Positions 34,189 to 63,505 are shown, counted from the stretch's first letter. The stretch: 64,000 nt of DNA from Trichosphaerium sp. ATCC 40318 (GCA_038496445.1 JALMLS010000062.1:620001-684000), one strand, 5' to 3'. Numbers and translations: made by a program. The notes: generated from the letters alone by a model not told the origin.

Positions 34189-34569
34189 GATCTTGGCACT
34201 CCAATATGAATGTAAAACTAAATAAAGTACCCAAGTTTTACTACTATTCGTTTTCATAGTTAGGCTGCATTGTTTACAGTTCCAATTTCAACAAGAAACA
34301 CATTTTGTGAGCAATCGAATAGACAGCGCATAAACCAATAAGCTAGGCTAAATACATTAGCCATCCATGAAATTGCGCTTTGCAGACACCGGTTTACAGT
34401 AAACGTGAAACACACTGTTCAATCACTAAAACAACGTTCAACGTAGAGCAAAGTAAGCAGTACAGACTTACATTCACATTTTGAGCAAGTGATACCACAT
34501 CCAGGCAGGAAATGGCATCCCATTGATTTCTGCCTTTGTAGTCCAATCTGATTAGCTTAGAACTGTGAG

Positions 34570-34750
34570 AGCATGTCCCATTTTTGTGTAGTAGAACATG
34601 CCTCCTGGATGGAGTAGGCAAGTTCATGAAAAGCGTTACAGTTTATGCACAAACCAGGTTGCCCACTAGTATGCTACTACCCTGGATCATTACTAATAAT
34701 CTACTAATACCTAGAGGTGCTGCTGGAATGAGGCAATTGGCTGTCAGCAT
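34570..34750 (+). pseudogene. Decayed paralog of the 10-Cys peptide core
   Basis: Fragments PFLCSRTC, PPGWSRQVHEK, CYYPGS and CCWNEA, with frameshifts and stops. Confidence 0.65.
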
Positions 34751-34976
34751 GGATCACCTTGAACACTGAAACTTAATTAAATTATACAACTAAGACTTGT
34801 TAGTGCAACAAAAGCATGTAATAGTTCATTGAGACCGAAACATATGTGACTGATATTTATGCTACATTTTGATATAACCAGCACTTTAGTTAGTAAACTG
34901 TAGTCTGATCTACTTGTTGGTACTTTTATTGATTCTTTACAATGATATATGGTACAACAAGTAATGCTTTGCGATC

Positions 34977-35374
34977 TTAGCAGCTTCCACAAGCAGCTTC
35001 GCTCCAGCAACACCATTTATCACTTCTGATACGGAAACATAATGGAGATCCAGGGTAGCAGTATGCAGTTGAACCTAATAAAGGTAAGTATTAAAGAAGT
35101 CTGCTACCATTCTTTGGATTTTCACATACATTGACCATTCTTTTCACGACCACGTTTACGCCATCCAGGAGGACACCATCCATTTGTATCACATGTTTCA
35201 CCACACAACAATGGTCCTTGCTAAATCGTATGTTAGAATACAAAGTAAATGTAACAGCAGAACACGACTTACTTCAGTTGCTCGTTTAGCTCTTTCACTG
35301 AGCTTTTTAGATCGTACTGCCAAGGCAACAGTTAATGCCATGAGTACAAAAGCGAAAAGTGTTGTTATTTGCAT
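34977..35374 (-). CDS. Secreted 10-Cys prepropeptide, leader type A, copy A2
   Basis: MQITTLFAFVLMALTVALAVRSKKLSERAKR-ATE plus the identical core. Confidence 0.9.
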
Positions 35375-35716
35375 TGTTCTATGAGGTGTGGTTGTTCTTG
35401 TTATGGTTTGTATTTATGACTGGAAGGGCGAGATGATTTAAGTCTCACGTGAAATGTTACGGTAAATTATATTTGCTTTAAAATCGTAAGTCTACTTACA
35501 AAACCCAGATAGAATAGCGTCATTTGTTTTGGTATATTGATGGCTAACGATCGCGGAGCAATTGGTGGATTTAGCGAAAAAGAAATGAGGTAAAACGACT
35601 TATGATACTTTATTTCACTGAATACAACACTTAACTTAAACTGGATTTCTAAGTGCACTCAAACCAAAATACAAAACAACAACCAACGATAAACCTCTTC
35701 TTCAAACAAACAACAA
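35375..35716. promoter_or_regulatory. Bidirectional promoter of peptide pair 2
   Basis: Homologous to 33468-33774. Confidence 0.7.
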
Positions 35717-36124
35717 ATGAAAACAACAATGTTATTCGTATTGGTGACTTTGGCGTTGATACCAATTGCCTTGACAACCCAATCTAAGCACGCTCAAGAC
35801 TCTGAAGAAATGCCAGATATGCACGAAAAGAGATCAACTGAGGCACTTGCTACTTCTACTTTGTACATGACTAACATATGGTTTAGCAAGGACCATTGTT
35901 GTGTGGCGAAACATGTGATACAAATGGATGGTGTCCTCCTGGATGGCGTAAACGTGGTCGTGAAAAGAATGGTCAATGTATGTGAAAAGAAAAATGTTGT
36001 TCAGTATCTCACGTTTATTTTGATAGGTTCAACTGCATACTGCTACCCTGGATCTCCATTATGTTTCCGTATCAGAAGTGATAAATGGTGTTGCTGGAGC
36101 GAAGCTGCTTGTGGAAGCTGCTAA
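35717..36124 (+). CDS. Secreted 10-Cys prepropeptide, leader type B, copy B2 (intron-1 GT donor lost)
   Basis: B leader plus an intact core. An 8-nt deletion (tatgtcga) turns GAG|GTATGT into GAG|GCACTT. Confidence 0.75.
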   Translation: MKTTMLFVLVTLALIPIALTTQSKHAQDSEEMPDMHEKRSTEALATSTLYMTNIWFSKDHCCVAKHVIQMDGVLLDGVNVVVKRMVNVCEKKNVVQYLTFILIGSTAYCYPGSPLCFRIRSDKWCCWSEAACGSC

Positions 36125-36317
36125 TATCCACAAACGTGTAAAACTTGAAATAAAGTTCCCAGTTACAAATTCTTGTTTAATTAAGATTGATTGAAAAAAA
36201 GAAAGGATGTGTTTGTATGACAAGTGCTATGTAAGAAAAACGTCTACACTAAAATCTTGTTGAGGAGGAGCACAACAGAACAAACTCTAGCGATACAGTA
36301 TACTAAAAGTTAAAAAT

Positions 36318-39300
36318 TTATTTCTTTTGGTGGGGTTTGAGCCTCACACTGAAAAGTAGTGTTTTACCACCATTTTTTCTTCTTTCCTCCTTTACCTTTC
36401 TTTTGACCTTTCTTTGCTGCTTTTGCAGCGTCTCTCTTTTCTTTTTCAAGGCGTTTAATCTTTTCGCTGTATGATACAAATGCAGCACCCCAAATTTCAC
36501 CAAGACGGTTTCTCGCATCATTAAGTGGTACAGCACTGTATTTTGGTGGCGTGCTTTTATCCTGGACAACAAGTTCCTACAAAAAAAAAAAAATCAGAAA
36601 AAAAAAAGAAAAAAAAAAGGTTTCAAAGCGACCTTTGTCAGTAGTGTCAAAAAAATGATAATTCAAGTTATTTGATACGTACCATAGCTACTAGTTTTTC
36701 TAAAGCATCATCACACTCAAAATCAATATTCTGGTTTGCAGTATGAAAGTCATCTTCCATATTGAAAATAAATTTCTCCACCATTTCATCAAGTTCTTCT
36801 TCTGTGCTATCTCCCTAAAACGAAAAATCATTAATCACTTCCAAAGAACAAAATAGTTCACAGCATGAATTACGTAATGTATACATTGTAAAAAAAACAA
36901 AAAGAAGGAGGATGACATGACGTTTGGAACAAAAGAAGGAAAATTGATCGTACTTTTAGTAAAAGGAAAAAATAACCTAGCACAGCCTCTTTCCATTCTT
37001 GTGCCTGCACTTCATCAATCAACCATGTCAACAATCCAGAGTTGGTGTTAATCCTAATATTAGTAAATAAACAAACAGCGGTGCACAACAATCACTATTG
37101 GTGGATTAAAAAAACGGCACGCACGTTTTCTTTGTAAGCAAGTTCAGTACAGTTTTCTCATACAAGATCATTAAACTATTGTAGCTCGAATACACCTTAA
37201 AAGCAACACCAGCAAAAGTTACCATACTCATTAGACCAACGTATCCACCAGCCTGCGAATGATAAAATTTAGATGTTTTGCGCTGAGAACAAGAAAAAAA
37301 AAGATATTCGTTGAATGTAACTTCAAAGCAGACGTACCTCTGTCATCAGATTAACAATGAGAGATATAACAGCAATGGCAAGAGTAACAACGATAGTTAT
37401 AAAATCTAGAGCAGACAATTTTGTCTTACACTTGGGCAAGGCAACTTTGACGTCAGCCTATAACACGTGTTAAAACGAAAAAGCTAAAGAAAGTAGACCT
37501 TACCATCGGAATATCACGGAAAGCACGCAAGAAAATATTGTTCATCTGTGGGTCGTTGTTTGCCATTGGGTCTTTCTTTTTTGTTTTGCTGAGAGGAGGT
37601 GTTTTCCTCTTGACCCTACGAAGGAAAAAGAGTCAAAACCCGGCTTAAAATAAAAAAAACAAGATGAGATTGACGAGTGCATACCTGTACAACATGACTA
37701 CTTCTTTAAATCTAGGCTCTTGTACAGTAACCTCATTGAACAAGTGTCCCATTTTTGTAATGTCACCGACTTGGGACTTGAGAGATTTACGCTCATACAC
37801 CATGACATCAGGGTCTGCTACTTCTTCTTCTACTTTTTTCTTTGACTTCTTTTCGCGATGTTTATGTTTCTTATGTCCGTCTCCTTTTACCGCTCTACTA
37901 TCTCTTCTAGGACGTGTACGTTTTTCTTCTTTGGATTTAGGAGTTGATTCAGGTGAAGTAGCAACACCATCTTCTTTTGCTTCTTCTTTTGAATCAGCTT
38001 TTTTACTTTCCTTTTCTGGGTTGACTTCTTTCTTATTTGCCTTGCTAGCACTCCTAGAATGCTTTCTAGGTTTTTCTTCTTTCGGTTTATCAGTATTATC
38101 GGAGTCTTTGTCTTCTTGTTTATCGTCATCCTTTTTTTCTTTTTTTTGTTCCTCTTTGGATGATCCTTCTTTTTTGCCGTCCTTGGCTCCTTCTTTAGCT
38201 TCTTTCTTATCGCCTCCTGATTTGGATGCATCCTTGGTATCCTTAGCATCTGCTGGTTTCTTCTTTGCTACAGAAAACACGTGAACACCCAATCAATTAA
38301 CGATAAAAGCGTACTGAAATATTTGTTTTTGGCGTAAGTCACTAGATTTTGTACTAGGATGTCTATCTTCTCCTTCACAAACTTTGAGCTCGTTTGATCT
38401 ACAACAGGTTTGTCAACACAATACAAAAAACAAACAGGAATAAATTATCTGATAATAACAATACGAACCGACATCCATGCCACGTGTGTAAATCCATACT
38501 TTATCCACAAAATCAGGTAGTTTTGCTTCTCCTTCATTCTACCGTAACACTGTCAATCAAAGCGCTAACTCAACGATAAATACGTACCGGGTGTGCCTTG
38601 TTGTAGTCTCCTAACAAGTTACCATCCAAAGTGTCAAAATCAGGTTCAATAGGAAGCGTTGTGACGTAATTTGCTTTTAACGCAAAGTCCCACTACAAAG
38701 GCACCATTGTAAGCAAAAGAAAATAAATCTCCAAAAAACAATTTCTCACCATTTCTTTGGATAAAGGTTCAAAGTTAGCTCTCTCCAATAGCTGTCTACA
38801 GTTCGTTAAGAACCTATCCTCAGCTGCTCTATACTACACGTGTGTGAGAACCCGCTTAGGAAAAATTGAATAAAAAGATCTGGAACTCTATGATCTTTTT
38901 CGGAGATCTCCGAAAAGAAAAAGAAGACGTCAACCCTCTTTTGTTGCTTTTTTCAGCTACTTACGCCTTCATTACCAACGTGTTTGGCTAATCTAGCACC
39001 AGAAGGTTCAAACAAGTTATAATCTGCTAAAACCTCCTTCCCAAGAGGCTTGTGAGATAGCATGATGATTAATTCTAGTCGATCGAAAAAGTCATTAAAT
39101 TCAAATCGTTGATCTGCTGCGATTTGAGTCTGAAGCTCCTTTCGCAGTTGTTGTACGGAGAAAGGGATGTATTGTTGCCTTTTTACAAAAACCTACAAAA
39201 AAAAACCGTATTAGCTCTCTTGAACTCCCTTTATATAAACTGAGGCTGAAACCACGCGTTTGAGGTCTCACGTGGTACACATAAAGTACAAAAAGTCGAT

Positions 39301-39422
39301 TTTTCAGAAAAGGAGCGAAAACAACTTGGCATCTCCGATGTTAATTAGCTGGTTTAGTTAGTTTGTACCTTGGTCTCGGTAGTTGAAGGTTTTTCTACGC
39401 TTTCAATTTGTTTTGAAGCCAT
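36318..39422 (-). CDS. DUF3754 / TMEM143-like membrane protein with a long charged low-complexity insert, multi-exon
   Basis: LPDFVDKVWIYTRG, LFNEVTVQEPRFKEVVMLYR, IFLRAFRDIPM/ADVK, LIDEVQAQEWKEAVLGYFFL, IDFECDDALEKL; K/E/D-rich insert at ~37800-38280. Confidence 0.8.
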
Positions 39423-39830
39423 TTTTTATTACAATCCGTTAGTAATATTATGAGGTACTATAGTATACGTCAGGGGAGCTTTTGTACTGTTTGCGTACTT
39501 TAAGAAATTCGCAGAGTCAAAAAACAACTACGACGCGTCTACAAAGCAAAAGAAACCACCAAGTCGAAGCGTGACGTTAGTTACCTTTTTACCAGATTAA
39601 AAGAAATCTTAAACTCCAAGGACTTAATGGTAGCGCTACCGAAACGTTATTATTTTAGCAAAAACGTTTACAATACACGAATCCCTTGATAGTGGATCTT
39701 ACAATTTATTAAAGTGAACTAAAATTCTCACAAAATATGGAACCTTTTTCTTAATTACAAGGTGTTGGAATTGGCGAGATATCGATTGAGTAAAGTGGCA
39801 ATTCCAGGGTGACACAATTGGGGTTTTTTT

Positions 39831-42290
39831 TTACTTACAGTACCGCCGCACTGTGTGGCTGAATTGTTCGTATACTCGCAAGTCACAACTGCTAAAGGCA
39901 GTACATCTTGCTGATCGCAATACTGCTTCCCAGTGCTTACGATTAATAAATAACTGCTGATCATCTTGATTTGACATTACGTGATCTGCCAAAGCCTTGC
40001 GCTTAGCTGCCTTTGAAATATCAGTTTCTGTAAATGATTGTACTTAGCAACGTACCTTGCATATTTCAACAATACTTCCTGCTGTGTACCCATGTAGTAC
40101 TTCGGCAATTCTATCAACTACGACACCTTCACCTAAATATGCCTCACCAATGCATTTCTAAGATAGAGCCAAGTGTTAGCAAATGAAAGTCTTGGCTGGT
40201 TTTTTCAATCACGCACAGAGAGGATATCACCCCTGGTTTCCATATCAGGATAAGGGATATAAATAAGCTCAGTAAACGTTGATAAAATTCCGTAAGGAAG
40301 CAAGTGTGGTCGACATGACGTTGCCACGAAGAAAACGCCGGTTGTACTGTTAACTTGTTGCACAAGTTGGCGCCATACAGATTGTGTACTTTACAAAATT
40401 GTTAACAGTTACCATACAAAAAGCAAGTTTTAGGTGTACGTACAACTCTTTCATAGCTACAAAATTATGGAAATTCCTGAAATGCATGACACATGGTATA
40501 ATTGTCAAAGCTTCCTTAATTTGTTTTTTCACAATCTCCACTGATTGAAAGAACTTGATGTTTACGCCCTAGATTATTATTACGCGTGACATTGATCAAG
40601 ATTACATACATCAATCTCCACATAGTGAACACCACATTCATTAGCTATAGCCTTGGCTATCATTCGCTTACCACATTCTTGGGCTCCGTAAAGAAAAAGG
40701 AATCTACCTGGAGACCCTCTATATTTGGCATATAAATGTGGATACTCCAATGGCAATCGTATCGCATCTCGTATTCCCTGTTTAACTCCACTTGATACGC
40801 AAACATCATTCCATGTAATACTTGGTATATTTAGCTGCCTTCTATCTATACACGTGCTTCTACAGGAATCCAAGACTTTCTAAGAATGTATTAATGAAAT
40901 ACATAATACTTTGTATTCACCTTAAAATGCTTGTTCGTTACAGTAACTTCTTCTTCCAATAGCAAGTTTATATTTTCTCTCATACAAGCCATACCAGCTT
41001 CTGTACAAAGTCGGATCAAGTCAGCAGGCACAAAACCATAAGTCTGCTCTGCTAGTTTAAAAAGATTAATATCTTGTGCAAGGTTCATATTTCGAGTCTG
41101 ATATTTTAAATGTGATAGTCTATCTACATTCACTACTTAGTCTTTCACATTGAGTCTTGGTGCTTTACCTATAACCCCAGGAACACCAATAAATATATGT
41201 TTGCCAAATCTACCTGGTCGTAGCAGTGCTTCGTCTACAGATTCCAGGCGACTAGTTGTAGCTAGAAGAATGATATTTCCTCTGTCTAATAGACCATCCG
41301 TGTACGCCATTAACAATGATACTATCCTACTCGATGGTCCGATCTAGGTCGCTTAATTATTGGCAAAATATTATTACGCACAACTGAGTGCCTTCGAGGA
41401 GCAACACTGTCAATATCATCAAAGAAAATAATAGCACGTGGAACGCTTTTAGCTTTTTGAAAAATCTTAGTCAACACGTGTTCGTCATCCCCATGAGTTG
41501 CACCAAGTAATTCAGGACCAGAAACAGCGATAAATAAGCAACCACATTCTTTAGAAATAGCACGAGCCAAGTGGGTTTTGCCACAGCCAGAAGGACCGTA
41601 CAGGATGATGCCCTAAAATATACCTTTAACAATTGTTATTTGGATTGTTCACATGCCTTACTAGGATTACACCGGAGTGTAGAATACAATGTGGGGTACT
41701 TCAAAGGCCATTCTATTATCTCACGGACCAATTGAACTTCTTTGTTGAGTCCTATTACACTACCGTACCCTAGGCATGTTGGACAATAGAACAGTGTTCG
41801 ACCTTTACCTTCTTTCTCAGAATAGCTCGGATTCTTGAGATGCTGAGCTTTCACCTTGCTGTACAACGTTTCTTTCTTCTTGTTTTCAGCTTTAAGAACT
41901 CCTCGGACAACTACAAGACCGCTAAAGGGTACTATAACAGAATTGTGTACCAACTAGATTGTAAGGTATTTTTAGCCACTTAATATTAGGTACCCTGCTA
42001 AACCTCACTCCTTCTTCAGTCACTGAGGGGTCTATCATTATAGTAGCAAGTGTGCCGCCCACAATAGATATCTTTCCGTTTACATGTAACTTGGGTGTAA
42101 CAAAAACCTCATCACCCTCTTGTAAATCCAATTTTTCGAGTGTTCTGCAATGTACAAACACTACTGAGCCATGCTCAGTGCCAATTATCCCACCAACGCT
42201 CAAATAGCAATATTCATCCCGATAATTGCTTAACTGGGCTTTCGAATCGCCTATACGCATTTCAGACAGCCCATTTATACTAACAACCAT
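39831..42290 (-). CDS. Divergent CDC48/p97-like AAA+ ATPase (N domain, D1, degenerate D2)
   Basis: LVREIIEWPLKYPTLY, ILYGPSGCGKTHLARAI, IIFFDDIDSVAPRR, DEALLRPGRF, TYGFVPADLIRLCTEAGM, IPSITWNDV...RLPLEYPHLY, YGAQECGKRMIAKAIANEC. Confidence 0.8.
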
Positions 42291-42486
42291 TACACATCAA
42301 AATAAGAATTAACACGCACAGATTAGGCACAGACGTCATAGTGATTGCGTAAACGCGACCTAGAATGAACTAGGATACTCAAGCGCTTTGTACAGTCAGC
42401 TTTGAACTACCTTTAACTGAAAGCAGTACTAAGGTCAAACATTTTTGTGTTTTTAATTTTTTTTTTATTGTACAATATTATGAGTT

Positions 42487-43607
<1,121 letters not shown>

Positions 43608-43753
43608 AACGTTGGTTGTTTTTTCGTTAAAAAAAACTTAACAGGTTAAGCCACTAGTTTTGAGTTGGAAGCACGTGATAACTTTCATTTGTAACAGACA
43701 CAACACAAACTAATGCTCTAAGACTCAGTGTTTATTTTCGTCACTACAACAAG

Positions 43754-44524
43754 TTACTTGGCGAGCATCATAGCTACCTAAACAGTGATTGTTAGTGGAT
43801 ACACAAGAAATAAATAAAAACGCACGAATTCTTCGTAGTTGATTTCACCGTCACCGTCGTGGTCTGCCTCGTCAATCATGTCAGAAATATCTTGATCGCT
43901 CAAGTTCTCACCAAGACCCTCCATAACCTTCTTCAATTCAGCTATAAGCAGTGAGTATACCCAGATTCATTTGCCTTGTGGATGAAAGCAGTTACCTTTT
44001 GAAATTTTTCCATCACCGTTTTGATCGAAAGCTTTAAATGCTTCACGGAGCTCATCTTGTAGATCACCTTTCGTCATTTGTTTGGCCATGAGTTGTAAAA
44101 ACTAAATAATTTAGTTTACCCAAAAGATAGTTCGGGTGGCACACGTGCGCAAGCGACACTAGCCCTTTTTTTTAAACTAACAATCATACTATCACTAAAT
44201 CTTAATTTCTCGCAGTAACGCACCTCGTCAAACTCTATAGTGCCTGAATTATCCTTGTCTACCTCATTTATCATTTGGTCCAGTTGTTCAGATGTTGGCT
44301 CTTGACCTTTGGGGCGGTTATGGCAAAATACTACGATCTTATTGGCAAATTTGCGTACCTAGAGACTTCATAACCTTTCCAAGTTCTTCCTTGCTAATCA
44401 TGCCGTTTCCGTCTTGGTCGAAAAGAGCGAACGCTTCTTTGAGCTCTTCTATTTGTTCCTTTGATAAATCAGCTTGTGCCTACAAAATCATTAGAGAAAA
44501 ACACAACAGGAGCTGCGTTACCAT
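43754..44524 (-). CDS. Calmodulin-like protein (4 EF-hands); first coding exon is ATG only
   Basis: [65 protein letters not shown], ends MMLAK*. Too divergent to call canonical CaM. Confidence 0.93.
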
Positions 44525-44816
44525 TGGTGTCTTTTGGTCAATACAATAAAATATCACATGTGTACGCTAACTTAACGGCGGTATACTAAAACGCGCTTTG
44601 GTAGTAGGAATATGTGGTAGGCGACTTTTGAGGCAGGCACAAAAAAAAACAAACAAGTGATCTTTCTTCTGTACCGTGAGTGCTCAGTAGCTCTTCTACA
44701 CAAAGATAATGCCAATGCAACACTGTTCGTTGAGACTGTTTGACTTGTGTACCAAGTTGATCGATTTTGAAAACCAAAAAAAAAACAGTTATTATTAATG
44801 GTATAATGAGGTACTA

Positions 44817-47800
44817 ATGGCCTCAAGTGGTAAAGGCGCACTGCAAATGTACAGTGATCATTGGCTCACCACCAAGGAAGAGTCTTTACTGTTTGATGCG
44901 AACCTCGTTAACCTAAAGTACAACGATGTGGCTACAGAGAAAGAATTTGATGTGAAGAAAAGTACCCGCGCTGTTTCTAAGGATAAGACGGACGAGGAGG
45001 TGAGAATTTTATTTTTTTTGTTATTTTATTGAGCTGACACTACAGAACACCGATGAAAGTCACAAATTAGTTGGTATAGTGGATGTGGACGAGTTTGAAT
45101 TCCACAAAAAAGCTGTCAAACGGTGGCGAACGGAATTGTTGGACACATGTACACCAAACCGAACCGCGCCCTCTTCGTTCCACTACACGCTTCAAAAACG
45201 CATGCAGGTTCAGAATTACCTTCATACAGTTCTTTTAAAGGACCAAAAGCGAAGAAAGAACATCAAGGTACGTTACTTACTTTTACGCTATTTTCAAAGC
45301 ATAAGATGCATCCACAATACAAAGCTGTAACGGCATGTATTTTTTTACCTGTCAACTGATAAATCAAAGAAATCGACAAGGGCATACCACGAAGAGCCTA
45401 CAAATATCCCAGTCGTAGTGCGACTTGGCGTTTTAACGCTGATTCCGTTGATCGAGAGCCTAAGTGAAGTCCAGGTATTTTATTCGTGTAATCATATTTT
45501 TTACAAGCGCCTTACAGCATGTAGGGCATTAATTATCAAAAATTATGCTTTCGCACTTTGGATATGTTTATTTCAGTTCTGCGCACTATAAAACGTCTCG
45601 GACTCAAGGACGAACCTACAGATTGTCTCGACGCGTTCAAAGACTTTATCTATAATTTAATTGAAAAAAACAAATTTACAATTGTACGTAACGCTATCGA
45701 TGCCTTGAATCGAAAATGGGTACTAATACAATCCTCAGGATTCACCAGAGAAATCTCAAGCTGTGGTAGCGCTTGTGGGATTAGCAATCTCAAGAGGAAA
45801 CGCTCATTTTCTTTTACAAGCAATTGACGTTTTATTTCGTATCTACAAAACTAACACGTATGTACACTTTGGAGGAACAAAATAATTTCTGTTCCGTTTG
45901 GTGAAAAATATTTAAATGAAAAAAAAAAGACTCACTGAGCGCGTCTCAGGTGTCATTATTATACTAACTGATATCTCTAGAAAATCCTCTAATGGTGCTG
46001 GACAAGCTCTGGACGTAGCTGATTTTTTAAAACAGTTAGCAACGTATAATCAAAAAACTAAGTTATCTATCCCACAGAGTGCTTTGTGTGGTACAAATCA
46101 ATTTTATTTTAGTTTTTCCAGGGCTGTTAAAGGGTATTGTTGACGTTTGTTATAAGGATCATGGGTACTAGAACTCGACAGAAAAAAACAACCAAAGAAG
46201 CCTCTTGAGTTTGCAAAGACTTCTGCAATAGCTTGTGATGGCACATATCTTTATTTCCATACTTCTGAAGGTGGTTTAAGTAAGATTGGCACTGGTAGAG
46301 AAGGTAACGCTTTTTATTGAGTCAAAATTTCAAAAAAAAAAATTAACTCGCAATAGGAACTGTTCAAGGTCTTCGTTATGTATCTAATTCTTCATACCGT
46401 ACAATGGATACAAATGTGTCTCTTGCATATACCAGAGGAAAATTGTATTATTACTCAGCTGCCTTGGCGCCAACTCCTGCTGTGGATGATCAAAAGAAGG
46501 AGGATGAAGCAAAAGCAGGCTCTTCTGAAAATCAAAAAGAAAATGAAAAGGATACAGTCACACCATCGTGTGTTGCTGTGATTGATCCTGTTACTTTGAA
46601 GCAAGAACAATTAATAACGTTGAACACAACAACAGCTGAGGGAACGCATTGGCTTCTCACAGAAGGCCGTTACTTGTATTTCTTGGGTGTAAAGAAGGTA
46701 TGTCAACGTTTCATATGGATCATACTCTAACATAGCGCTCAGCGTTCAGGAAAAGACCAAAAGGATAAACCAAAACCAGCTCAAGTTGATAAAATGGAAC
46801 AAGACGCTTTACTACCACCACCTACTGGCTTACACCCAGCCATTGCATTTGAGCTTGGCATGCCTGATGTCGACTTGAATATGCGTGATGAAGAAGAAGA
46901 CATGTCTTCCAGCGCTAGTTCTGAGTCTAGTGATTCTGATGACGAGGAAGAAGAGGTAAAAAACATGTCTTGTTGTTTTTATATCAGTATTAATAAATTT
47001 ATTCAGGTCGAAGAATGGGAAGATAGTGAGCCTCCAATAGACCCATTTTTGTCACGTGCCAACAAGGACGAAAAATTTGTAGTTGACATTTACGATCCTG
47101 CTCAAATTGGTTCGGATACACAAGAGTTATCTGAAGTGCAATCTCTACAGTTACAAGGACCAGAAATTGCTGGTGAATCAATAGCTCGTACGTTCTACAT
47201 TTCTTATTGGTTTCTAAAGGCTAATAATTATTTGTAGGTCATAATGCCCTTACATTGAATGATCTTCAAAAAGGCGCTTTTTATGTTACTGGTCACCAGC
47301 TCGTGGCTGTTGTATTATCATCAACAAATTCAAGGAAATCCAATAACAATCTTACTATTGCACGCACTTTCTCGTTGACTGATGGCAATTTCCTCGAAGA
47401 TAACACAATCGCTGGGGTACTATTTTTTAGCGCTAAACCTTTGAGTTTCTTATTGTTTTATGAAGCACACGTGCCAATTACGTATGTGTTACGAACACAA
47501 ATCAAACTTGATTTGGGGATACACTCACCCAGAGCGCCGCATCAAGACATGGCTGAATTTAGGTCTTGTACCACATATTGAAGATGGTGGTGTTGGTAAG
47601 ACTCAAACTACTTATTGTATTTTATAATAACTAACACTGGTATCATCATAGATGACATGACAGATAGCGGGCCAAGAGAGATGAAGCTTTTACCTTTCTC
47701 ACCAGAGTCAGTTCTTCAAAAGCCAAAATTTGTTGAGCTTGAGAAAGTATCTACAACCCCTGCTGATACATTCGGCCTCCCTTCACCGGCAGCAGTAAAA

Positions 47801-50800: not shown

Positions 50801-53800
50801 TTACTTTATTGGATACTTGATATTGATTACCTTTTGTTAGTGAGCAAGCCATGGCGCGCATGAGACAGAGTACACGTGGTGTTAATGTTAAATCAGAGGT
50901 TAGTGATGATCACCCTCTTGCCAAATCATTCTCGACCATTCCTGCCACTGCACACTCTGCCAATATTCAGAGAAAGCGTAGACAAGAGAGAGAACAACAA
51001 GCTGCTTTCCAGCGTAGAGTAAAGGCTTTACGAAGATGGGTCCATGCCTACGATAATTGGAAAGAATGGCAAGATAGTTCTCTTATGCCGAAAGGCAGAA
51101 AGACTGAGCTACCTCCTGAGTCTCCTATTCAAGGCGTCATCTCGTTCGTGAAGAGCGTTATAAGTGTAAAGGAGTTGGAGAAAGTAATCAAGGTCAATGT
51201 AACAAGAGCAAAGTCACGTGTTCAAGGTCTAGCCTTCTACAACCAACTCTTGTGCTTCTGCTCATTTGGATCAGTGCGCCATCAGCTCCTTAGCTCAATA
51301 GGAGCACCTCTAGGATCTGGACACTACCTTGACAACATATACACATGTGGAGAGGAACTAACGAACAAGGTGTCCGCCGAGTTTGCTGCATTGTTCCAAA
51401 AGTTTTCAGACATTGCTCACAATACAAAACTCGATCCGACTTCTCGTCTGTACGCTCTCAAGATATACGCGTTATCGTACAAGGACTTTGATGTTCAACT
51501 ATTGACCAGCACAAATGCATTTGGTTTATTGCGTAACATCATCTCTGAGAAATCTAAAGTCAAAGCCATCGCTGCTGTTGATGCAATGGACGTTGATACA
51601 CCTTTGCAAAATGGAGGAGACAATGTGACAAAACAACAGCAAGATCAAGAAGAGCAAGAGCTTCAAGAACAGCACCAACGTGAAGAAACCTTGCGACACT
51701 CTGCTTGGAATGCTTTTAGATTGCTTGCTGCTCAGTGTATTGAATGGGGCATTGGTAGAAAAACATCTGACCCTGTTCAAGATCAAGTACGTCAACTACT
51801 GAATGTTTATATCTCTTGTCTATCTAACTCTTGGTTGTAGGTATTTACATTAATGTGTCTCGAACTGAAGAGACTCTCTGAAAGTCTTAAAAAAGGAGAG
51901 AATTCAGTAAAGGGCTCAGAAGAGGATAGAGAGCAATGCTTCCAATTGCTTTCATTGTTGTACCTTCTGGGTGGATCACAAACACATTTACGTGCTTCTG
52001 AGAATGTTGATAACTTGATAACCCTACTCGATGAGACTACCGCACCAAGATCACAACGTCTCATTTTAAGGTATGTACCAAAAGTTACAGTGTTCCAGAA
52101 ACCTTTTTTTGCTAACACCCTTCTTTCAGATTGTGCCGAAGAATCTTACCGGTACAAACCAAGGCTGATCCAAAACTTATTACGTTCTTCCTCGATGAGA
52201 TTGGTCGTTGGCTGTTTAAGGGAAAATACCAACAACCAAACACTGTTGATACTCCTAGACAACCTGAAGAGCCTAAAGCCGTAAGTTTATCATATGATTG
52301 TGAAACATGTTGACGTTACTATCTAGGCACCTACACAAGCCGATGACGAAGATAGCGACTCTGAAGAAGAGCCAGCACAGTCCACCGAACGCTACGCTGT
52401 ATATATTCACTCTTGGGCGCTCGGTTACAAGCGTCTTGTTGAGGCTTGCGTGCAAGTTTTCGACGCTGATTTCCTAAGACAAGCTGGATCAAATGCTGGA
52501 TACGGTAGGTTTGCAGCACAAAATGCTGAAGCCAAAGCACAACAAACCATTCAAGAGATACAATCCAAAGAAAAAGCTTTATTGAAGGTTGGTACTGAAG
52601 ACCAGTGCAAACGTCTTGCTGCTGCTCTTGGTGGCTCAGGTGCTACAGTATCAGTCACTCTCGCACCCGATGAAGATGGTGACGAAACACAAGAAGGTCA
52701 AGAAGTGACGCCAAATCAAAGTAAGGTCAAAAATAATCCACAACATTGGGCAGATGGTTACGCTGCATATTCGCTATCATCTGAACATATCGCACTTGTT
52801 CGATACCTGATGCACTCGCCTACCTGGGCAAAAGTCATTCGTGATGAATTGAAGGTAACGAGTGAATGCTGTAAAGCAAAAACTTTTAAACTAACAAACT
52901 GCATAGAACAACCTTCTGAACATACCTAAAGTAATGCAAATATTGCAAGACGGAGGTAGCGATATCAGTCAGATCGTACCAAGAACGTTGGCTGCACTAT
53001 GTATAGTTGGTGGCTTCCATGAGGTATGCTAGTAGAACGATTGGATTAGATTGTATGTCTGATTCTCACTGTTTTAATTTAGAATATTCGTATCGGTGGT
53101 AAAGTAAGCACAATGATAGGAAGTGATGATACTCGTTTCGCCACAGTGGTTGGCTACCAACCTGGTATCTCATCAATAGCCGAGGTAGTCTATGACGATG
53201 ATCCTACAACAACTATTCACAAGTTGGATACCAAACTACTACAGCCTTCAACTGAGATTAAACTTCATAGAGACGTCATTGAGAAGATAGTACCTGATGT
53301 ACGTGTTGGCTATGTCTCGTTGGTTTGTTATTTACTAACTTATGTTGTCATTAGCTATTACCATCGTTCCTGTCTGTTATTAGATCTTCGAATGAAATGG
53401 ACGTTGATTCTAGTGCTATGTCAACACAGGGCAAGGGATTATACCCAGAATTTGTTTCTAGATCCCTCGCTGCTCTTTGTGAATTGTCAAAAACATCACA
53501 AGCAGCTAACCTCATATTATCATTGGGCAAAGACAAGGTATGTTCCTGTTTACTTATATATCACGAAAATGTTTTAACTTAACACTTGTGATAGATATCG
53601 ACAATGATAGATATGGCAAAAGGCTCAGACTCTCGTGTCAGTGCTTCTGACATGGAACGTGATGCATTCTATCTTGCTCAACGTCTATGGAACATTGTAA
53701 CCTCACCTGTATCCAACGAAAAAATTGGAAACTCGATGAAGTCTATCCTACCATATTTCCTTCATGCTAAGATGGTTGATATTACGCCTACTTGTTTCAA

Positions 53801-56800
53801 GTATGTTATATTTTACTCCTTGGATTTTATTTTAAACTAAGTGGACTATTAGGTTGGTTAAGAACAAACAACAGCAGCAAGGTCTAATCTTCTGGGGAGA
53901 TGATATGCGTACCATTGAGCTCACAAACGGTCGCTTCTCTGGCGGCGGTGGACGAGGTGGTCGTGGCTCCCTATTTGGCGGTGGGTATGGTTCTCGACCT
54001 CCTGGTAGAAAAGGAGAACAGTTATTCCATGCCAATGTTGCTATTCCCGTTAAAGTTCCAGAGTTTTACTTTGAAGTTGAGATAATCAAAGCTGATTCCA
54101 ACTCAAGTATTGTCAGTGTTGGTTTTGCACCTGAAGGTCAAACGACGTGGGGACAAGGAAGTTATAGATACCAAGCCAATAGAGTGCGTACATGGTTCGT
54201 TAATGGTGCTAGACGCCAGGAAGCTTATGGCGCCCACTATCGTGCCAAGTGTGTTATTGGCTGTGGATGGAAAAAGAATGGAGGTGTTATTTTCTTCACA
54301 AAGGACGGAGAAGACCTTGGAGAGGTGACCAACTTGCTTTATTTAAAACCTTAGTTTGTATTATATTGACTTTTTGTTGTAGGCCTTTAATTCTGTACAA
54401 TTGGGCAATTTATTGCCTTGTATCGGTCTAAGCAAGGGTGTCAAAGTCAAAATCAACTTTGGCCAAGAAAAATTCAAGTATGTCATGGTACCAGACGAAA
54501 ATATCGACCCTGAAGAGCTTGCTCGTCGTAAGAAGGAGAGTGATGAAAGACGTAAACGTGATATTGAAGAAGAAGAAAAACGACGCAAGAAAGAAAAGGA
54601 AGATCGCGATGCTGCCCAGAAGGAAGCAGCACAACCAATGATTGCTATGGGATACGAACTAAAACAAGCCATACGCGCCCTTGAAGCTACAGGCTATCAA
54701 GGTATTGAACCTGCAATCAACTGGCTCCTTGACAACGGCGATGCTGGATTTGAAGAGGAAGAAGAACCAAAACCAGAAGAGCCTGAAGAGGATACAACTG
54801 CTAAACCTGATGACAAAGGTAAAGCTGAGGATGACGGAACAGGAGAACCTGATTCTAGTGATCCTAACACTCCAGCCGAAGAAGGATACAATCCAAAGAG
54901 CAGTCAAAGTTATCAATTGCCTGATGGTTACACATACCCAGCTGATTTCTTGCTTTCCCAAGAGGATGCTAAACAAAACGATATGTTAACTGAATGGGAA
55001 GAAAGAGTAATACCTGAGATTAAGGCTTGGATGGAGAAGGATGGATACCCTCGCTTTGAAGTGTCAGAGTATATTCAACAAATTAAAAATGAGTTGATGA
55101 ATGGTGACGAAAACTCAGCACGCACAATGGTCTTACAAATTCTTGGTGACTCATCTGCTAATATAAGGTACTGTTTGATTGTTTTTATGCGTGTCCTTGT
55201 TCTAATAGTTGTAAGGTTACCTTCCGGCACAAGCCAAGCTGCCAAGTCTCAACCGAAGAAACAACAACTTGATATTGATCGTGTTGTTGTTGGTTTACTT
55301 TTGTCGGTTAAAGAACAAGACCCAACTGATATCTCATCTCGTCATTGGCTCTCTGCAATGAACGCTACAATGGGTAGAATTGGTTGTGTTAAAGCTGTAG
55401 ATAGAAAGGAGAACCTCATCTTTTTGGAGTTCTACGATCCAGAATCTGGTGTTCTTAAAGAGTGGTGGTTCCCAGTTCAGACTCTACAACGCCCTGCTGC
55501 CACACAAACAGGAGTTGAAAAGTCTTTAAATATACCATTCGTGAATGCTGCCTATGATACAGTGCAACAACAGCTTGTAACCACAGAATCACAACTCGGC
55601 CGTATATACATGCGCAGAATTGTGTTATCCTTGTTGAGGCATACTGGCTTGGATAAGAACGGTACGTTTAGAAATCAAATTTGGATCTCCTTTTTGTGGC
55701 TTATTTTTCTGTTAAGGTTTGAATGTTGATGATCTACTTCAACTGAGTGCTGCGGAATACATGTCATCTGATACTGTTATTGCTACTAATAAACTACTTC
55801 GTGGTAGCGAGACTGTTAAGGGTATGGAATTGATTGACAGCAAGCTTGTTGAGCTGTACAAGAGAGGAAGTGAGGCAGAACTGACACAATTGCTATCAAC
55901 GAAGGCTGTTAAAATGCTACGCAGATTTGGTAAACGTATGATAGACAACCAATCCATTGTCAATGCTAAAAACGTACGACTTGGTCCTATATTCATAAAC
56001 AAACCCAAGAGAACGAGCTTACTAATTTCTTAGGTTGGTACAATCACAAAGATTAGCGTACCTGACACCAGGTCAATGATGGTTGTATTTGATCGATCCA
56101 CAAACCTGCCTGCTGATTCTAAAGGAAAACTTGGCTTCTACCTAGACGCTGAGTGCACCAAACCTGTAAAGGTATTCCCTGGTGTTGGACCGTTCCTCCC
56201 ATTCGTTATTGATGCCAATGAATCATTCATTCGTCTAAAGGTACTATTTCTATTCCATCATCTCTTCAGTTTATACTGACCTTGTTTTAAAAGGCCAAAT
56301 CGAAGATTGCCAATTGCAAGTTCAAGCTAGACGCATTGCCACTATCAGTGAATGCACCTCTAAGTAAATGGCTTGTTGAGTTCATTGTAGATCAAGGCTT
56401 TAAATTATCGCCTACATCACCTGACCTTGTACCTGTATTCAACTGTATTCTAGATTTTATATACCATTCAAAAACACCTTCCAATCTAAAGGAGGGTATG
56501 TATAACCTCTTGGCATCTACTTTCGGACGTCTAAGAAGAGACAGCGCTGGAAGAGAGACGCTAAAGAAACTTCCTTTGAAGGTACTATTTTTTCAAAAAA
56601 AAAATGGAGTTGACAGGTTTGTTTTCTTATGCTGTCTGTAGCGCCTTTCAAAGCTGAAACAAGAAATGCAATACCTTTATGAACAAGAGACAAAGAGGGG
56701 TGTATTACACTCTACGTACTTGCAGAGCTTAACAGAATTCATGGTTGAGGTCAAACTATTCGATCTTGAAGTCAAAGCAATGCGTCGTTCTAGAATGAAA

Positions 56801-59800
56801 AAAGACGATACACTCTCTGTTGCTATTTATTTAAGCTCCTTCCTTGAATTAAAGAAGGAATCTATCGAAAAGGCATCCAAAGGTGCGTTAATAAGAACAC
56901 TCCGCGTTTCATTGTTCGTTTAGCGAGCTAACCGTATTATCAAGGTGAGAAGGCCAAAACAGAGCCATCAGGCGATAGTGAGTTGGAACGTGCCCTCAAA
57001 GCCTCCCTCGCAAACGCCAATGCAGGAGAAGATGCTCCTGCAACTCAAGCCCAGGATGATGCATCATCTGGAGGATCCCTATCATGTTCAGGATCTGATT
57101 CTGAGGACGCCGATTTTAAGGCTGCTCTTGAAGCCTCTGTTCAGTCTTTTGGTGGTGACGCCGCTCCAATGGAAGTTGACGCTCAACCAACTCCAGTAAA
57201 ATTGGATTTTGATGTCGCCAACGATGATGAAGACGATGACGATGAAGAAGAAGCAATGCGTGCAGCCATCGCAGCCTCTCTTGCAACCCACGAACCAGAA
57301 AATGCCGGAGAAGGACAAGCCGATTCTATGGAAGTGGACAAGCCTGAAGAAGCTGCTGATGATACCAAACCTTCTGAAGATAAGTCAGAGGATAAACCAG
57401 AAGAAAAGCCTGAGGATAAAGAACCTGAAAACAAGGAAGAAGAAGAGCCTAAAGAACCTATTGACGACAACCAAAACCAAGGTGGACTTGCACCTCCGCC
57501 TGTTCCAAACATGTTTGGCTTTGGTGGTGTAGGTGGCGAAGAAGATGACTTAGCCATGGCTATACGTCTCTCAATGGCTCAAGGTGACGGTGAAGGCTTT
57601 AGTATCCCGGCAGATATGGATCCAAACATGCCTATGCAGATAGACTTGAACCGTGTACTTCAAGAGTCACTTGGTGGCGCTGATTTGGGATTCCCATTTG
57701 GTGCTCCAAACAATCAAGATGACAACCAAGACAATCAACCTAAGGATGACGATAAGGCTGAAAACGATGGAAACGACAATAAGGATACTGGTGATAAACC
57801 AGACGAGCCTATGAAGGACGTTGAACCTAATGTCGATGGTGCTGAACCTAAAACACCAGCTCCACCAAAACCACGTAAGTTTTTTTGTTTTAAATCTATG
57901 GATTTTGTATTGTTGTTTGTTTAACTCTTTTATGTGTTTAGCTACTGGTTTCCCTAAACCTCCTACGAAAAAGACTAAGTCTAGAAGGTCTCGACCTACT
58001 GAAACCGACTGGTTCATTAAGATTTGTGCAGTAACACAAGTCTTGGATGTTCTTTGCTTCAGAAAAAAGAAGGCTTATCCTTTCCGCCGTCAAGTGCTTC
58101 ATGATTTGACAAGGAAGAGCTGGCAGGAAACAAAGAAGGAGACTATCAAACCACGGATCATTATGGTTGAGAATCTTCCTTGTGTTCCTCTTGATCGCCA
58201 CTCAGAACTCGTTTCTACACTTGCTGTAGTTTTCGATGACTTGATCGCAAGTGTCCGTAATAGCCTTTATGTACCTTTCGATCATGCCAACAAGATAAGT
58301 TGCAAGTACGTCAATCCCTTTATTTAAATCCAAGCCTACTTGTGTGCTAATCATAAACTACCTAGCTTTGGTTTTGTTGAAATACAGAGCTTGTCTAAGG
58401 TTGACGAAGCAATTGAAAAGCTTTCCAAGTATAAATTCAAACTCCCTCAACAACTAAAGGATGTTGTTCCTAAAACAGATAAGACATCTTATTCATTAAA
58501 AGCAAAGAGCTTTTTGGAGCTAGAAACGAACAAAGACCCACGTGTAACAATTGTACGTCATTTCAAAAAAATTAGTACATGTAAGCGCTGACCTCTTTTT
58601 GTTTTAGTTCCTTAAAGGACTGTTGTATGACGAGAGCAAAAAAGAATTATCTCCTGCCTTCAAGAAAGTGCTATCAGAGGTGTTCGTTTTATTCGCTGGA
58701 GACAAAGCAGGTGTTCTTGGTATGTGGTCACTAAAGAAAGATTGTTACTTTATTCAACACATTACTTATTGGTTTTTTTTACTACAGACTTTAAAGCGTT
58801 ATCTGCACTACAGCTTCAATCAATGGGTGAAAAAATGGATCAAAAGACTTTTGACTTTATAGTATCCAAGTACGATAATAACACAATCGTTCGTGAAGTC
58901 CCAGGTAAAGATGGTGCCGAGTGCGTTTCAGAAAAGATTCATGGTCTAACCCTAAAGGTACGTTGTCTCTGTTTTTTTTTGTTTGGCCTTTCTGTCTAAT
59001 GTACGATAAAGGGATTCATTGCACACTATGAAACAGATCAAGTACCTAACCAAGATCCTGGGTACACTTGGTCAGAGCTAGAGGCTCTGGGTTACGACCT
59101 GCACCTTGAACGCAGTTTCTACTTTAAGCTTGAAGATGCTATTACAGCTATGGAGTCTAATCACTTTGCAAAACTGATTGTTGATGAACAAATTGTTCGT
59201 TATGCTGAAGACCTTGTAGCAGAGTTCGAACTGGCATCTCCTTTGCTTCTAAGTCACTCCCACATCAAACCTATCGAAGAATCAAATTATCTTTCTCAAG
59301 TGTTCCCTCTTGTTGCCAAACTTCCTTTGCCTGCACTAAGGCTCAGGTTCCAAATCTTGCACCACTTGAATACCGCTCTTAAAGATGTGCTATCATGCAT
59401 AAACTTTGGATCAAGCGGATGGCTCTCTCAGACGGTGACAAAGTGTCGTGGGTTAATGTTCCACATGGTCAAGATGACATTCTTCTACAAGGTCTTGGGC
59501 CAAACTGCTGTCAAGGTACTGAATACTTCTGTTTTCGTTTCTAAGAACCCAGATTTTGACTTTTTTTCTTGAAGGTACCACAGCCTACTGTATCTATCAA
59601 CAGGCTCAAACTTGCTGCTGTTAAAGAGAAGGACCCACCAAAATGTCTTGATGATTATCTTAAAAACACGTGCTTTGGTATTACATTCCATCACTTGAAG
59701 AAGACCCCACCATCACACTTTAGACAAAAGAAACCTCCTGGCGCAGAACCTCACTTTGCCTTGAAGATTGACTTTAAAGGAGAAAACGTTGAGGGTGAAG

Positions 59801-61093
59801 GTGGTCCATACCGACAATTCTTTACTGATATCTCACGTGAGCTCACACACGTGCTACCGCTATTGATACCTTGCCCTAATGCCATTACTGGCACTGGTAC
59901 GCTTATTTTCGATGTAGAATGGTTTTTTTTTTGTTCTGACATTTCACCTAAGGTAAGAACCAAGATAAGTATATTACAGCTCCATCGTGCAAATCCCGAG
60001 TTCATTTGGAAATGTACAAGTTCCTTGGTAAATTGATGGGCATGGCTATACGAACAGGCGTCATGTTGACAATTGACTTTCCAGAGTTCTTTTGGAAGCC
60101 TCTTGTTGGACAACCATTAGAGCTAGCGGATCTCAGTAAGGTCGACAAGTCGCTTTATGGGTTCCTTGAGTTTATCAAAAACTGCGAACGCGAGGTACCT
60201 ATATTTCTAACTAATACCAGCGGAATGCTGACTCCTTTGTCAAGGATCTTGAAGGACCAAACCGCAAGATATTCGAAAAGTTCCAAATATTGCTAAGCGA
60301 TAAGACTGAAGTGTTATTGAAGCCTCATGGTGACCAAATAGATGTCAACTGGGCAAACAGAGGAGAATATGTTGATTTAGTCATTTCTAAACGACTACAT
60401 GAAGCTAGAGCTCAGACTAACGCCATACGTGAAGGTACGTACCTAACAAAGATACTGTAGTATTTCTTGAGTGCATAAGCTAATAATCTGTTTAGGTATG
60501 AACTCTGTTGTACCACCTATGCTCATGAAGATATGCACTTGGCGCGATTTAGAATGGCGCGTCTGTGGCAAACCAATCATTGACATTAAGCTCCTTAAAC
60601 GTCATACAGAATATAGTGGTGTTCTTCCTACTGCACCTCATATTATGTACTTTTGGCAGACACTGCAGAGCTTCTCTCAGGAAGATAGAAGGTAAACAAT
60701 CGTTAACCCTCAATAATATCAAGAAAAAAAAAAGGATTTTTCTTGAGGTGCAATATCTTCGTGATACTTATCTTTGTTAATAGAGCGTTTGTTCGCTTTG
60801 CATGGGCACAAGAGAGACTACCAGGTTCTGATCAAGAATTCGAACGCACACGGACACGCATGTTGATCAAACCGTTCGATACATCTAACCCTGATAATTG
60901 CTTCCCAAAGGCTGATACTTGTTTCTTCAACCTTATGCTCCCAGCCTACTCTAGTGCTGAAATTCTGCGTAAGCAGTTCTTGTTTGCTATCCACACAGAC
61001 GCTGACTCTATGGATGCGGATGATCCTCAAGAAGAGGAACCACTAGGACGGCCTACACGAACAGGATTATCGGCCTTTTTGGATTTTAGGTAA
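44817..61093 (+). CDS. Giant HECT E3 ubiquitin ligase (HECTD4-like): ESKHPY/CUB-like, SPRY, UBA, UIMs, RRM-like, HECT; many exons
   Basis: ACDGTYLY...GGLSKIGTG, VVESKHPY, SPRY FYFEVEI...IGCG...IFFTKDGEDLG, UBA AMGYELKQAIRALEATG...AINWLL, UIMs, HECT FKGENVEGEGGPYRQFF...FAWAQERLP...PKADTCFFNLMLPAYSS. Confidence 0.92.
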
Positions 61094-61304
61094 ACCTTTT
61101 GCCAATTCACAAAAAAAAGTGTAAACATTTTTCAACCGAACCAAAAAACAAACCTGAACAGACCCTATTGGCATATTTTGTAAATTGTACCACAATATCC
61201 ATGCAATAAATGTACAGATCCTACCTGTAAAAAGTGTCTTTTGAGTCATTGATCAAAAAAAGTTGGACAGAAAAGCAATTTCACGTATTTCTATGGTACA
61301 CGTG

Positions 61305-61618
61305 TCAAAATGTGAAGGTACGTATGTACTGCTTACTTTAGCTCTACGTTGAACATTATTTTAGCAATTGGACAGTGTGTTTCACGTTTATAGTAAACCT
61401 GTTTCTGCTAAAGCTCAATTTCATGGATGGCTAATATATTTAGCAATGCTTATTGTTTTATGCACGCACATTAACATGCGCTGTCTATTCGACTAACTCA
61501 CAAAATGTGTTTCTTGTTGAAATTGGAACTGTAAACAATGCAACCTAACTATGAAAACGAATAGTAGTAAAACTTGGGTACTTTATTTAGTTTTACATTC
61601 GATTGGAGTGCCAAGATC
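61305..61618. repeat. Inverted duplicate of the B1 3' flank (34189-~34485)
   Basis: Reverse complement of gatcttggcactcc...ttgtttacagttccaatttcaacaagaaacac...gtgaaacacactg...gtaagcagtaca. Confidence 0.9.
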
Positions 61619-62011
61619 TCAGCAGCTTCCACAAGCAGCTTCGCTCCAGCAACACCATTTATCACTTCTTATGCGAAAGCATAGTGGAGATCCAGGGTAG
61701 CAGTATGCAGTTGAACCTATCAAAATAAACGTGAGATACTGAACAACACATTTTTCTTTTCACATACATTGACCATTCTTTTCACGACCACGTTTACGCC
61801 ATCCAGGAGGACACCATCCATTTGTATCACATGTTTCACCACACAACAGTGGTCCTTGCTATACAAACAATAGTTAGAAAAGGAAATGTAAGAGGAGATC
61901 TTGACTTACTTCAGTTGCTCGTTTAGCTCTTTCACTGAGCTCATTAGATTGGACCGCCAAGGCAACAGTTAATGCCATGAGTACAAAAGCGAAAAGTGTT
62001 GTTGTTTGCAT
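61619..62011 (-). CDS. Secreted 10-Cys prepropeptide, leader type A, copy A3
   Basis: MQTTTLFAFVLMALTVALAVQSNELSERAKR-ATE plus the identical core; TGA stop. Confidence 0.9.
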
Positions 62012-62345
62012 TGTTCTATGAGGTGTGGTTGTTCTTGTTATGGTTTGTATTTATGACTGGAAGGTCAATATGATTTAAGTCTCCATTTCACTTGAATTTT
62101 ACGGTAAATTATATTTGTTTCACTATCGTAAGTCTACTTTGCAAAACCCAGATAGAATAGTGTTGTTGTTTTAGTATATTGATGACTAACGATCATGGAT
62201 AACAAGTGTTGGATTTAGCGAAAAAGAAATGTGGTAAACAGCTTATGATACTTTTATTCAGTGAATATGAAGACTTAAATCGTCTAAGTGCATTCAAACA
62301 AAACCAATTTACAAAACCTCAACCAACAACAAACCTCATCTTCAA
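62012..62345. promoter_or_regulatory. Bidirectional promoter of peptide pair 3
   Basis: Homologous to the other two spacers. Confidence 0.7.
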
Positions 62346-62766
62346 ATGAAAACAACAATATTATTTGTATTGGTGACTTTGGCATTGATACCAATTGCCT
62401 TGACGACCCAATCTAAGCATGCTCAAGACTCTGAAGAAATGCCAGATATGCACGAAAAGAGATCAACTGAGGTATGTCGACACTTGCTACTTTTACATTG
62501 TATTGTTAATTAACATGCGATTTAGCAAGGACCACTGTTGTGTGGCGAAACATGTGATACAAATGGATGGTGTCCTCCTGGATGGCGTAAACGTGGTCGT
62601 GAAAAGAATGGTCAATGTATGTGAAAATCAAATATTGGTAACACTTCTTTAATACTAACCTTTATTAGGTTCAACTGCATACTGCTACCCTGGATCTCCA
62701 TTATGCTTTCGCATAAGAAGTGATAAATGGTGTTGCTGGAGCGAAGCTGCTTGTGGAAGTTGCTAA
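62346..62766 (+). CDS. Secreted 10-Cys prepropeptide, leader type B, copy B3
   Basis: MKTTILFVLVTLALIPIALTTQSKHAQDSEEMPDMHEKR-STE plus the identical core. Confidence 0.9.
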
Positions 62767-62914
62767 GATTGCAAAGCCACACTTGTTGTGCCACATATCA
62801 TTGTAAAGAATCAATAAAAGTGCCAACAAGTAGAATCAGACTCAGTTTACTAACTAAAGTGCTGGTTGTATCAAAATGTAGCATAAATATCAGTCACAAT
62901 TCTTCGGCCAATGA
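62767..62914. repeat. Inverted duplicate of the A2 3' flank (~34826-34976)
   Basis: tcattgtaaagaatcaataaaag...gtttactaactaaagtgctgg...cataaatatcagtcaca matches the reverse complement of the A2 downstream region. Confidence 0.9.
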
Positions 62915-63451
62915 GGAATTTCGACTCGTAAAAAGTTGAGCGTAAAAATAATATGGTTCAGAGATTTGGTCTTTTTTTGGTTTATTTTTACGCTCAAAAC
63001 TTTTCACTCGTAATCGTAATTTACATGTAAATGTTGTTAGTGAACTACTGAGGCTTAACCTATGTTTTATTAAGTTTACAAGGTTGTTAATAATGACAGT
63101 GCTGTCACAGTGATTGAAAAAAAACCAATTGATTCACTTCTATTGATGAGAGCCTACTGAGCACTTTCTAATGACTTTAAAGTATAACGTTGCAAAAACA
63201 GCGTTAAACAACGTCTCAATGTATCTGAAGAGCTTGTATAAGGACCAATAACAAGTGGTGATCTTTTTTTGTATTAATGACTGTATTGTGCAACCAATAA
63301 ATAAAGTGTTTTTGAATGAGTTACGATTTACGAGTGAAAAGCATTGAGCGTAAAAAAAACGTAAAAAACTAAACCCAAAACTGTCGTAAAACTAAGTCCA
63401 TTCTTTGAAACCAGCAATTTTTACGCTCAGCTTTTTACGAGTCGAAATTCC
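62915..63451. mobile_element. Non-autonomous DNA transposon (MITE), ~537 bp
   Basis: ~35-bp terminal inverted repeats ggaatttcgactcgtaaaaag(t/c)tgagcgtaaaaat with 1 mismatch; subterminal inverted repeats at ~62985-63025 and ~63317-63356; no ORF; flanking trinucleotides tga / tta. Confidence 0.85.
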
Positions 63452-63505
63452 TTAATCCAACACTTGTTATCCATGATCGTTAGTCATCAATATACTAAAA
63501 CAACA

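Follow-up and report, generated by a model that had tools for sequence, protein, structure and literature searches.

Does a DNA segment that carries two promoters and two first exons invert between the coding exons on either side of it, and if so, is it a switch that still turns or the trace of past events? The question is raised by a locus of Trichosphaerium sp. ATCC 40318 at which genes of one family lie head to head. The DNA analyzed (the window, a stretch of 64 kb) is eukaryotic, with short introns and ~39% G+C. Comparison of the window with itself revealed a unit of ~1.1 kb in three copies, each of which consists of a head-to-head pair of three-exon genes; neither self-comparison nor BLAST detected copies of the paired unit beyond these three within the window. 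Below, A and B denote the type of leader, X and Y the type of intron 2, and Greek letters the 3' flanks.

33079-34188, pair 1: divergent genes A1 (minus strand) and B1 (plus strand), just before position 34977, at which the initial annotation had begun
34977-36124, pair 2: divergent genes A2 (minus strand) and B2 (plus strand)
61619-62766, pair 3: divergent genes A3 (minus strand) and B3 (plus strand)
33079-33467, minus strand, gene A1: A-type leader, intron 2 of type X (33177-33227), 3' flank gamma (weakly beta-like)
33775-34188, plus strand, gene B1: B-type leader with a 9-nt deletion, intron 2 of type Y (34038-34090), flank alpha
34977-35374, minus strand, gene A2: A-type leader, intron 2 of type Y (35075-35129), flank beta
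35717-36124, plus strand, gene B2: B-type leader, intron 2 of type X (35978-36026), flank delta (weakly alpha-like)
61619-62011, minus strand, gene A3: A-type leader, intron 2 of type X (61717-61767), flank alpha
62346-62766, plus strand, gene B3: B-type leader, intron 2 of type Y (62617-62668), flank beta

This map of modules is observed directly. All three pairs have exactly one A and one B leader, and exactly one X and one Y intron 2. Each pair is a quasi-palindrome whose layers, from the outside in, are unique flanks, exon 3 arms, unlike introns 2, exon 2 arms and an asymmetric core of ~630-670 nt in total, in which intron 1A, exon 1A, two divergent promoters, exon 1B and intron 1B follow one another. 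In pair 2 the layers are placed as follows.

34977-35074, minus strand: exon 3 arm of pair 2 (outer homology block), 100% identical to the inverted 36027-36124
35130-35220, minus strand: exon 2 arm of pair 2 (inner homology block), an inverted repeat with 35887-35977
35221-35886: core of pair 2, oriented in the window like the cores of pairs 1 and 3 but, in comparison with pair 3, flipped with respect to flanks alpha and beta

Leaders, peptide and surroundings of the pairs

Exon 1 encodes a signal and propeptide of one of two types: the A leader has 34 residues and ends in KR-ATE, and the B leader has 39-42 residues and ends in KR-STE. Identity among leaders is 88-98% within a type and 60-64% between A and B. 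Exons 2 and 3 (91 and 98 nt) encode one identical ten-cysteine peptide in all six genes, and the peptide is predicted to be secreted. The leader of B1 (33775-33891) is three residues shorter than those of B2 and B3, owing to its 9-nt deletion, and starts with MN instead of MK. Intron 1 of B2 (35843-35886) has lost its GT donor via a 9-nt deletion and now starts with GC. An in-frame alternative GT donor was sought and rejected, the nearest GT adding 20 nt out of frame. Left unspliced, B2 happens to read through as a single uninterrupted ORF of 135 codons, which reaches the usual stop and takes exon 2 in a wrong frame. B2 would thus either use the GC donor or be inactive.

To place the peptide in a family, exons were translated separately and databases were searched by single exon. 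A Pfam search of each exon gave no family for the peptide, a word search with the exon 1 ORF gave no match, and phmmer with exon 3 against 1.84 billion representatives returned only three weak matches, which their Pfam content (RCC1 repeats etc.) marks as spurious. Metagenomes contained no exact copy of a 32-mer taken from exon 2, and a protein-guided scan of them with the uninterrupted B2 ORF (35717-36121) found no relative; Rfam gave no match in the window. By these exon-wise searches the peptide family is apparently an orphan, with no curated family and no match outside this genome.

Further traces of the family and its promoters lie around the pairs. A CACGTG motif is found at 33538-33546 and at 35446-35454, ~70 nt upstream of the start codons of A1 and A2, and is lost in pair 3. 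A short inverted fragment at 63451-63528, ~700 nt downstream of B3, matches the pair 2 promoter region (35491-35574) at 74%. A degenerate remnant of a member of the same gene family, comprising the 3' part of exon 2 and exon 3 with most of intron 2 gone, lies at ~34600-34760 on the plus strand; its site is the 337-nt junction that separates pairs 1 and 2, between flank alpha and flank beta.

Re-assortment of introns, flanks and cores

The six introns 2 fall into two classes. Type X, in A1, B2 and A3, has 96-100% identity within the class (the introns of A3 and A1 are identical), and type Y, in B1, A2 and B3, has 85-91%. Identity between X and Y is 61-64%, which is alignment background, and the only parts that they have in common are the first 11 bases and the last few. 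The initial annotation had described a linkage of A with X and B with Y in pairs 1 and 3, and of A with Y and B with X in pair 2, and these class identities bear it out. It had also noticed one 3' flank common to B1 and A3 and a second one common to A2 and B3, and alignment confirmed both.

34189-34497, plus strand: flank alpha after B1, inverted match of 61294-61618
61294-61618, minus strand: flank alpha after A3, inverted match of 34189-34497
34835-34976, minus strand: flank beta after A2, inverted match of 62767-62907
62767-62907, plus strand: flank beta after B3, inverted match of 34835-34976

Between B1 and A3 the alpha flanks are 96% identical over the first 100 nt and 99% identical over a repeat match of 104 nt, and between A2 and B3 the beta flanks are 91% identical over the first 100 nt. 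The differences between intron classes and between flank classes are far beyond chance. The two outer flanks, beta-like to the left of pair 1 (after A1) and alpha-like to the right of pair 2 (after B2), are classed weakly, on ~50 nt of similarity, with z of 5-8 versus ~0 for the other class. In BLAST comparisons of the pairs, the direct alignment continues past the genes into the flank on either side for 40-57 nt, which also speaks for this classing, whereas inverted alignments end at the stop codon.

Flank alpha follows Y and the B leader in pair 1, and X and the A leader in pair 3; flank beta follows Y and the A leader in pair 2, and Y and the B leader in pair 3. Seen from the alpha side, the three pairs read as follows, the beta side being the complement in each.

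Pair 1, alpha side: intron 2 of type Y, leader B
Pair 2, alpha side: intron 2 of type X, leader B (its flank weakly alpha-like)
Pair 3, alpha side: intron 2 of type X, leader A

Three of the four possible arrangements are therefore represented among the three pairs. For pairs 2 and 3, sliding identity gave a direct match of the core (35250-35850) and an inverted match of intron 2 and the flanks. For pairs 1 and 3, the direct match reaches from one intron 2 through to the other, and it is the flanks that match inverted. The points at which direct gives way to inverted match lie inside exon 2 for pairs 2 and 3, and inside exon 3 for pairs 1 and 3; that these exchange points fall inside exons is likewise a direct observation. 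Read as events, an exchange in exon 2 that turned the core around would separate pair 2 from pair 3, an exchange in exon 3 that turned the core and both introns 2 around as one piece would separate pair 1 from pair 3, and both steps together would separate pair 1 from pair 2. At site 21 of exon 2, B2 and B3 have a C, which travels with the B core, and because it does so the exchange on the B side is confined to the last 70 nt of exon 2 and the first 11 nt of intron 2.

The initial annotation had proposed that crossover inside the inverted exon repeats flips the segment from exon 1A through the promoters to exon 1B. Re-assortment and exchange points inside the inverted exon repeats agree with this proposal; a single flip does not. 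Since alpha adjoins Y in B1 and X in A3, a second ring of exchange in exon 3 is required, and since intron 2 type and 3' flank are unlinked, one central flip is insufficient as the whole explanation and at least two nested exchanges are needed. The accompanying claim that re-assortment leaves the peptide unchanged holds, the product of exons 2 and 3 being the same in all six genes. An excised circle that took in B1, alpha, beta and A2 was considered as the source of pair 3 and rejected, since it would have given a Y/Y pair and would call for a larger number of events.

How the arrangements arose

The arms of the pairs provide the homology on which exchange could act. In a repeat search the exon 2 block with the adjoining intron ends extends over ~118 nt at 97% identity and the exon 3 block over ~110 nt at 95-98%, with exact runs of 81-105 nt common to the arms. 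Exon 3 is 100% identical between A1 and B1 and between A2 and B2, and 97% identical between A3 and B3. All six parsimony-informative sites of exon 3 unite the arms of one pair, and not one of them follows the type of leader, intron or flank; the changes in exon 3 among the six genes are all synonymous. Because exon 3 groups by pair while leaders and introns 2 differ anciently between the arms, the arms have undergone gene conversion with each other after the pairs were duplicated. This arm-to-arm homogenization is visible directly in the alignments. The locus thus has the marks of an inverted-repeat locus, namely high-identity inverted arms, concerted evolution of the arms, and differences in orientation relative to the flanks with switch points inside the arms.

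We propose, with a probability of about 0.7 and on the evidence of three pairs in one genome, that the arrangements are fixed historical differences between paralogous loci, produced by crossover between arms together with gene conversion, and that they are a neutral by-product of the repeat layout and not a programmed switch. The inverted arms of exon 2 and exon 3, which flank the asymmetric core and the unlike introns 2, would recombine by homology. Gene conversion, by which the exons within a pair stay alike, would be the usual resolution, and an occasional crossover would invert whatever sits between the exchanged exons: the core alone if the crossover is in exon 2, the core and both introns 2 if it is in exon 3. 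Crossover is an alternative outcome of conversion intermediates, and between inverted repeats it inverts the DNA in between, as is established for the palindromes of sex chromosomes, where conversion between arms is frequent and inversion rarer (PMC3723533). The pairs would have been duplicated, pair 3 standing opposite to the others by its flanks, and later flips and conversion between paralogs would have left three of the four arrangements. We infer that the flips came about by crossover and inversion and not by templated replacement, crossover being favored over templated repair because in every pair both leader types, both intron 2 types and both flank classes are kept, once each. We also infer that the events are old, because the modules common to the pairs are 4-15% diverged.

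Gene conversion from other paralogs has also been at work, since the core is a mosaic and exon 3 of pair 3 diverges beside a near-identical alpha flank. In the core, nearest relatives change from module to module: B1 and B2 group in the B promoters (93%), B2 and B3 in B exon 1 (96%), B1 and B3 in B intron 1 (91%), A1 and A3 in A exon 1 (98%), and A2 and A3 in the A promoters (85%). Judged by these groupings, the non-palindromic core is evidently a mosaic of parts with different nearest relatives, and inversion would be unable to reshuffle it. Of the 98 positions of exon 3, pair 3 and pair 1 disagree at 6-7, although the alpha flank next to this exon is 96-99% identical between them, which suggests import from another paralog. 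Compared with 34091-34188, five synonymous sites are common to both arms of pair 3 (61619-61716 and 62669-62766); two of the five also occur in pair 2, and there are private changes besides.

The same data raise the alternative that no inversion took place and that ectopic gene conversion or gap repair among paralogs re-assorted the modules. A broken pair would then have been repaired from another pair aligned either way, so that a tract of core or intron 2 was copied in the 'wrong' orientation. Ectopic conversion is evidently frequent and could yield the same pattern without a true inversion: module genealogies are discordant even within the non-palindromic core, exon 3 of pair 3 carries its five-site haplotype beside the near-identical alpha flank, and the three cores share their orientation in the window although the flanks of pair 3 are inverted, as if the core had been copied in direct order. 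Every pair is reciprocal, however, which a single crossover gives directly and which one-sided conversions would reach only by way of X/X or Y/Y pairs, and the core of pair 3 is not especially close to either possible donor. We therefore regard re-assortment by ectopic repair alone as unlikely, although it fares best among the alternatives.

A less probable proposal is that recombination goes on at present in a multinucleate amoeba, whose nuclei or cells would hold a mixture of the four isomers, and that selection maintains a single intron of each type, X and Y, in every pair. If this were true, the unlike introns would split each arm into two blocks of ~100 nt and so limit palindrome-driven instability, and that limit would serve a gene family amplified for bulk production of a peptide.

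Whole-genome amplification is known to make inverted chimeras, and it is conceivable, at still lower odds, that the orientation of a core or an arm was set wrongly across the inverted repeats during assembly. For the published Trichosphaerium draft (PMC10521059), whole-genome-amplified DNA was sequenced with Nanopore and PacBio and assembled with Canu, followed by three rounds of short-read polishing in Pilon and by reduction with Redundans; if the window belongs to that draft, the origin from amplified DNA would speak for such an artefact. Against it, there is no N in the window, and variants specific to a pair or private to an arm are preserved, where collapse or mis-polishing would have blurred them. 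Moreover, the three separate loci each present a clean, complete arrangement with both flanks.

There remains the reading as an active switch, which the initial annotation had set beside a historical one. In a flip the two promoters and the two leaders move as one block, with no effect on the peptide, and for this reason the locus has no switch logic; a flip re-partners only intron 2 and the 3' UTR, and the change of product that marks an inversion switch does not occur. Pfam detected no recombinase or transposase domain in 14 ORFs of 116-442 aa between 22.7 and 61.1 kb, in which spliced genes were scanned as ORF pieces, and the only domains in these ORFs were HECT, UBA and UIM. Exon-sized ORFs with UBA, UIM and HECT domains lie at 54401-61093 on the plus strand, which suggests that a large gene for a putative HECT-type ubiquitin ligase terminates ~200 nt short of flank alpha at pair 3. 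Homology blocks of ~100 nt usually recombine rarely. That the pairs still invert at an appreciable frequency, with both orientations together in a clonal culture, is the least probable of the readings: the long exact runs shared by the arms, the complete identity of exon 3 within pairs 1 and 2 (a sign of recent arm-to-arm exchange), the presence of three of four isomers among only three pairs, and plastid genomes that coexist as two such isomers (PMC7145664) are in its favor, but the repeats are the coding exons themselves with no dedicated sites, the Pfam scan of the 14 ORFs gave no recombinase domain, the divergence of shared modules means that differences between pairs are not recent, and in the best-studied palindrome, on a sex chromosome, conversions far exceed inversions, with 56 of the former and 3 of the latter counted (PMC3723533).

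Known inverted-repeat systems and meaning for the family

Site-specific invertible switches include promoter inversion of the fim and hin type in bacteria, the shufflons, and the FLP system of the yeast 2-micron plasmid. Like these, the amoeba locus has a promoter-bearing segment between inverted repeats. It differs in that no dedicated recombinase, among the ORFs scanned, and no short specific sites were found, and in that the segment has two divergent promoters with their own first exons, so that nothing is turned on or off.

The sex-chromosome palindromes of primates and mouse share more with the amoeba pairs, having gene-bearing inverted arms that evolve in concert, a spacer whose orientation varies between copies, and exchange points within the arms (PMC3723533, PMC8327919); in the sex-chromosome palindromes the spacer inverts by non-allelic homologous recombination. 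In primate palindromes the orientation of the spacer differs in about half of the comparisons between species (PMC8327919). Those arms measure 10 kb to 1 Mb, whereas the amoeba pairs have exon blocks of ~100 nt, each arm being split by an unlike intron into two nested rings of exchange. The amoeba spacer, moreover, holds the promoters and first exons of both genes, and the amoeba comparison is one of paralogous pairs in a single genome and not of orthologs or individuals. In the flip-flop of the plastid inverted repeat, as in the amoeba, homologous recombination reverses a single-copy segment with no change of product (PMC7145664). The plastid isomers, however, are about equally frequent within a cell, whereas the amoeba repeats are nuclear and a hundred times shorter.

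The locus is an unexceptional mosaic left by recombination within a family of orphan genes and represents a well-known kind of repeat-mediated rearrangement; it reveals no new mechanism and no regulatory switch. What it offers is a compact, well-resolved case of the evolution of head-to-head duplicates, in which the exons themselves serve as substrates for recombination. Conversion from arm to arm keeps the peptide identical, and 3' UTRs come to be joined to other promoters and leaders by crossover or templated repair; the locus also helps to explain the near-invariance of this orphan family. In practical terms, the pairs call for caution in annotating and assembling the family, and they provide a ready locus at which mitotic recombination between inverted repeats can be measured in an amoeba.
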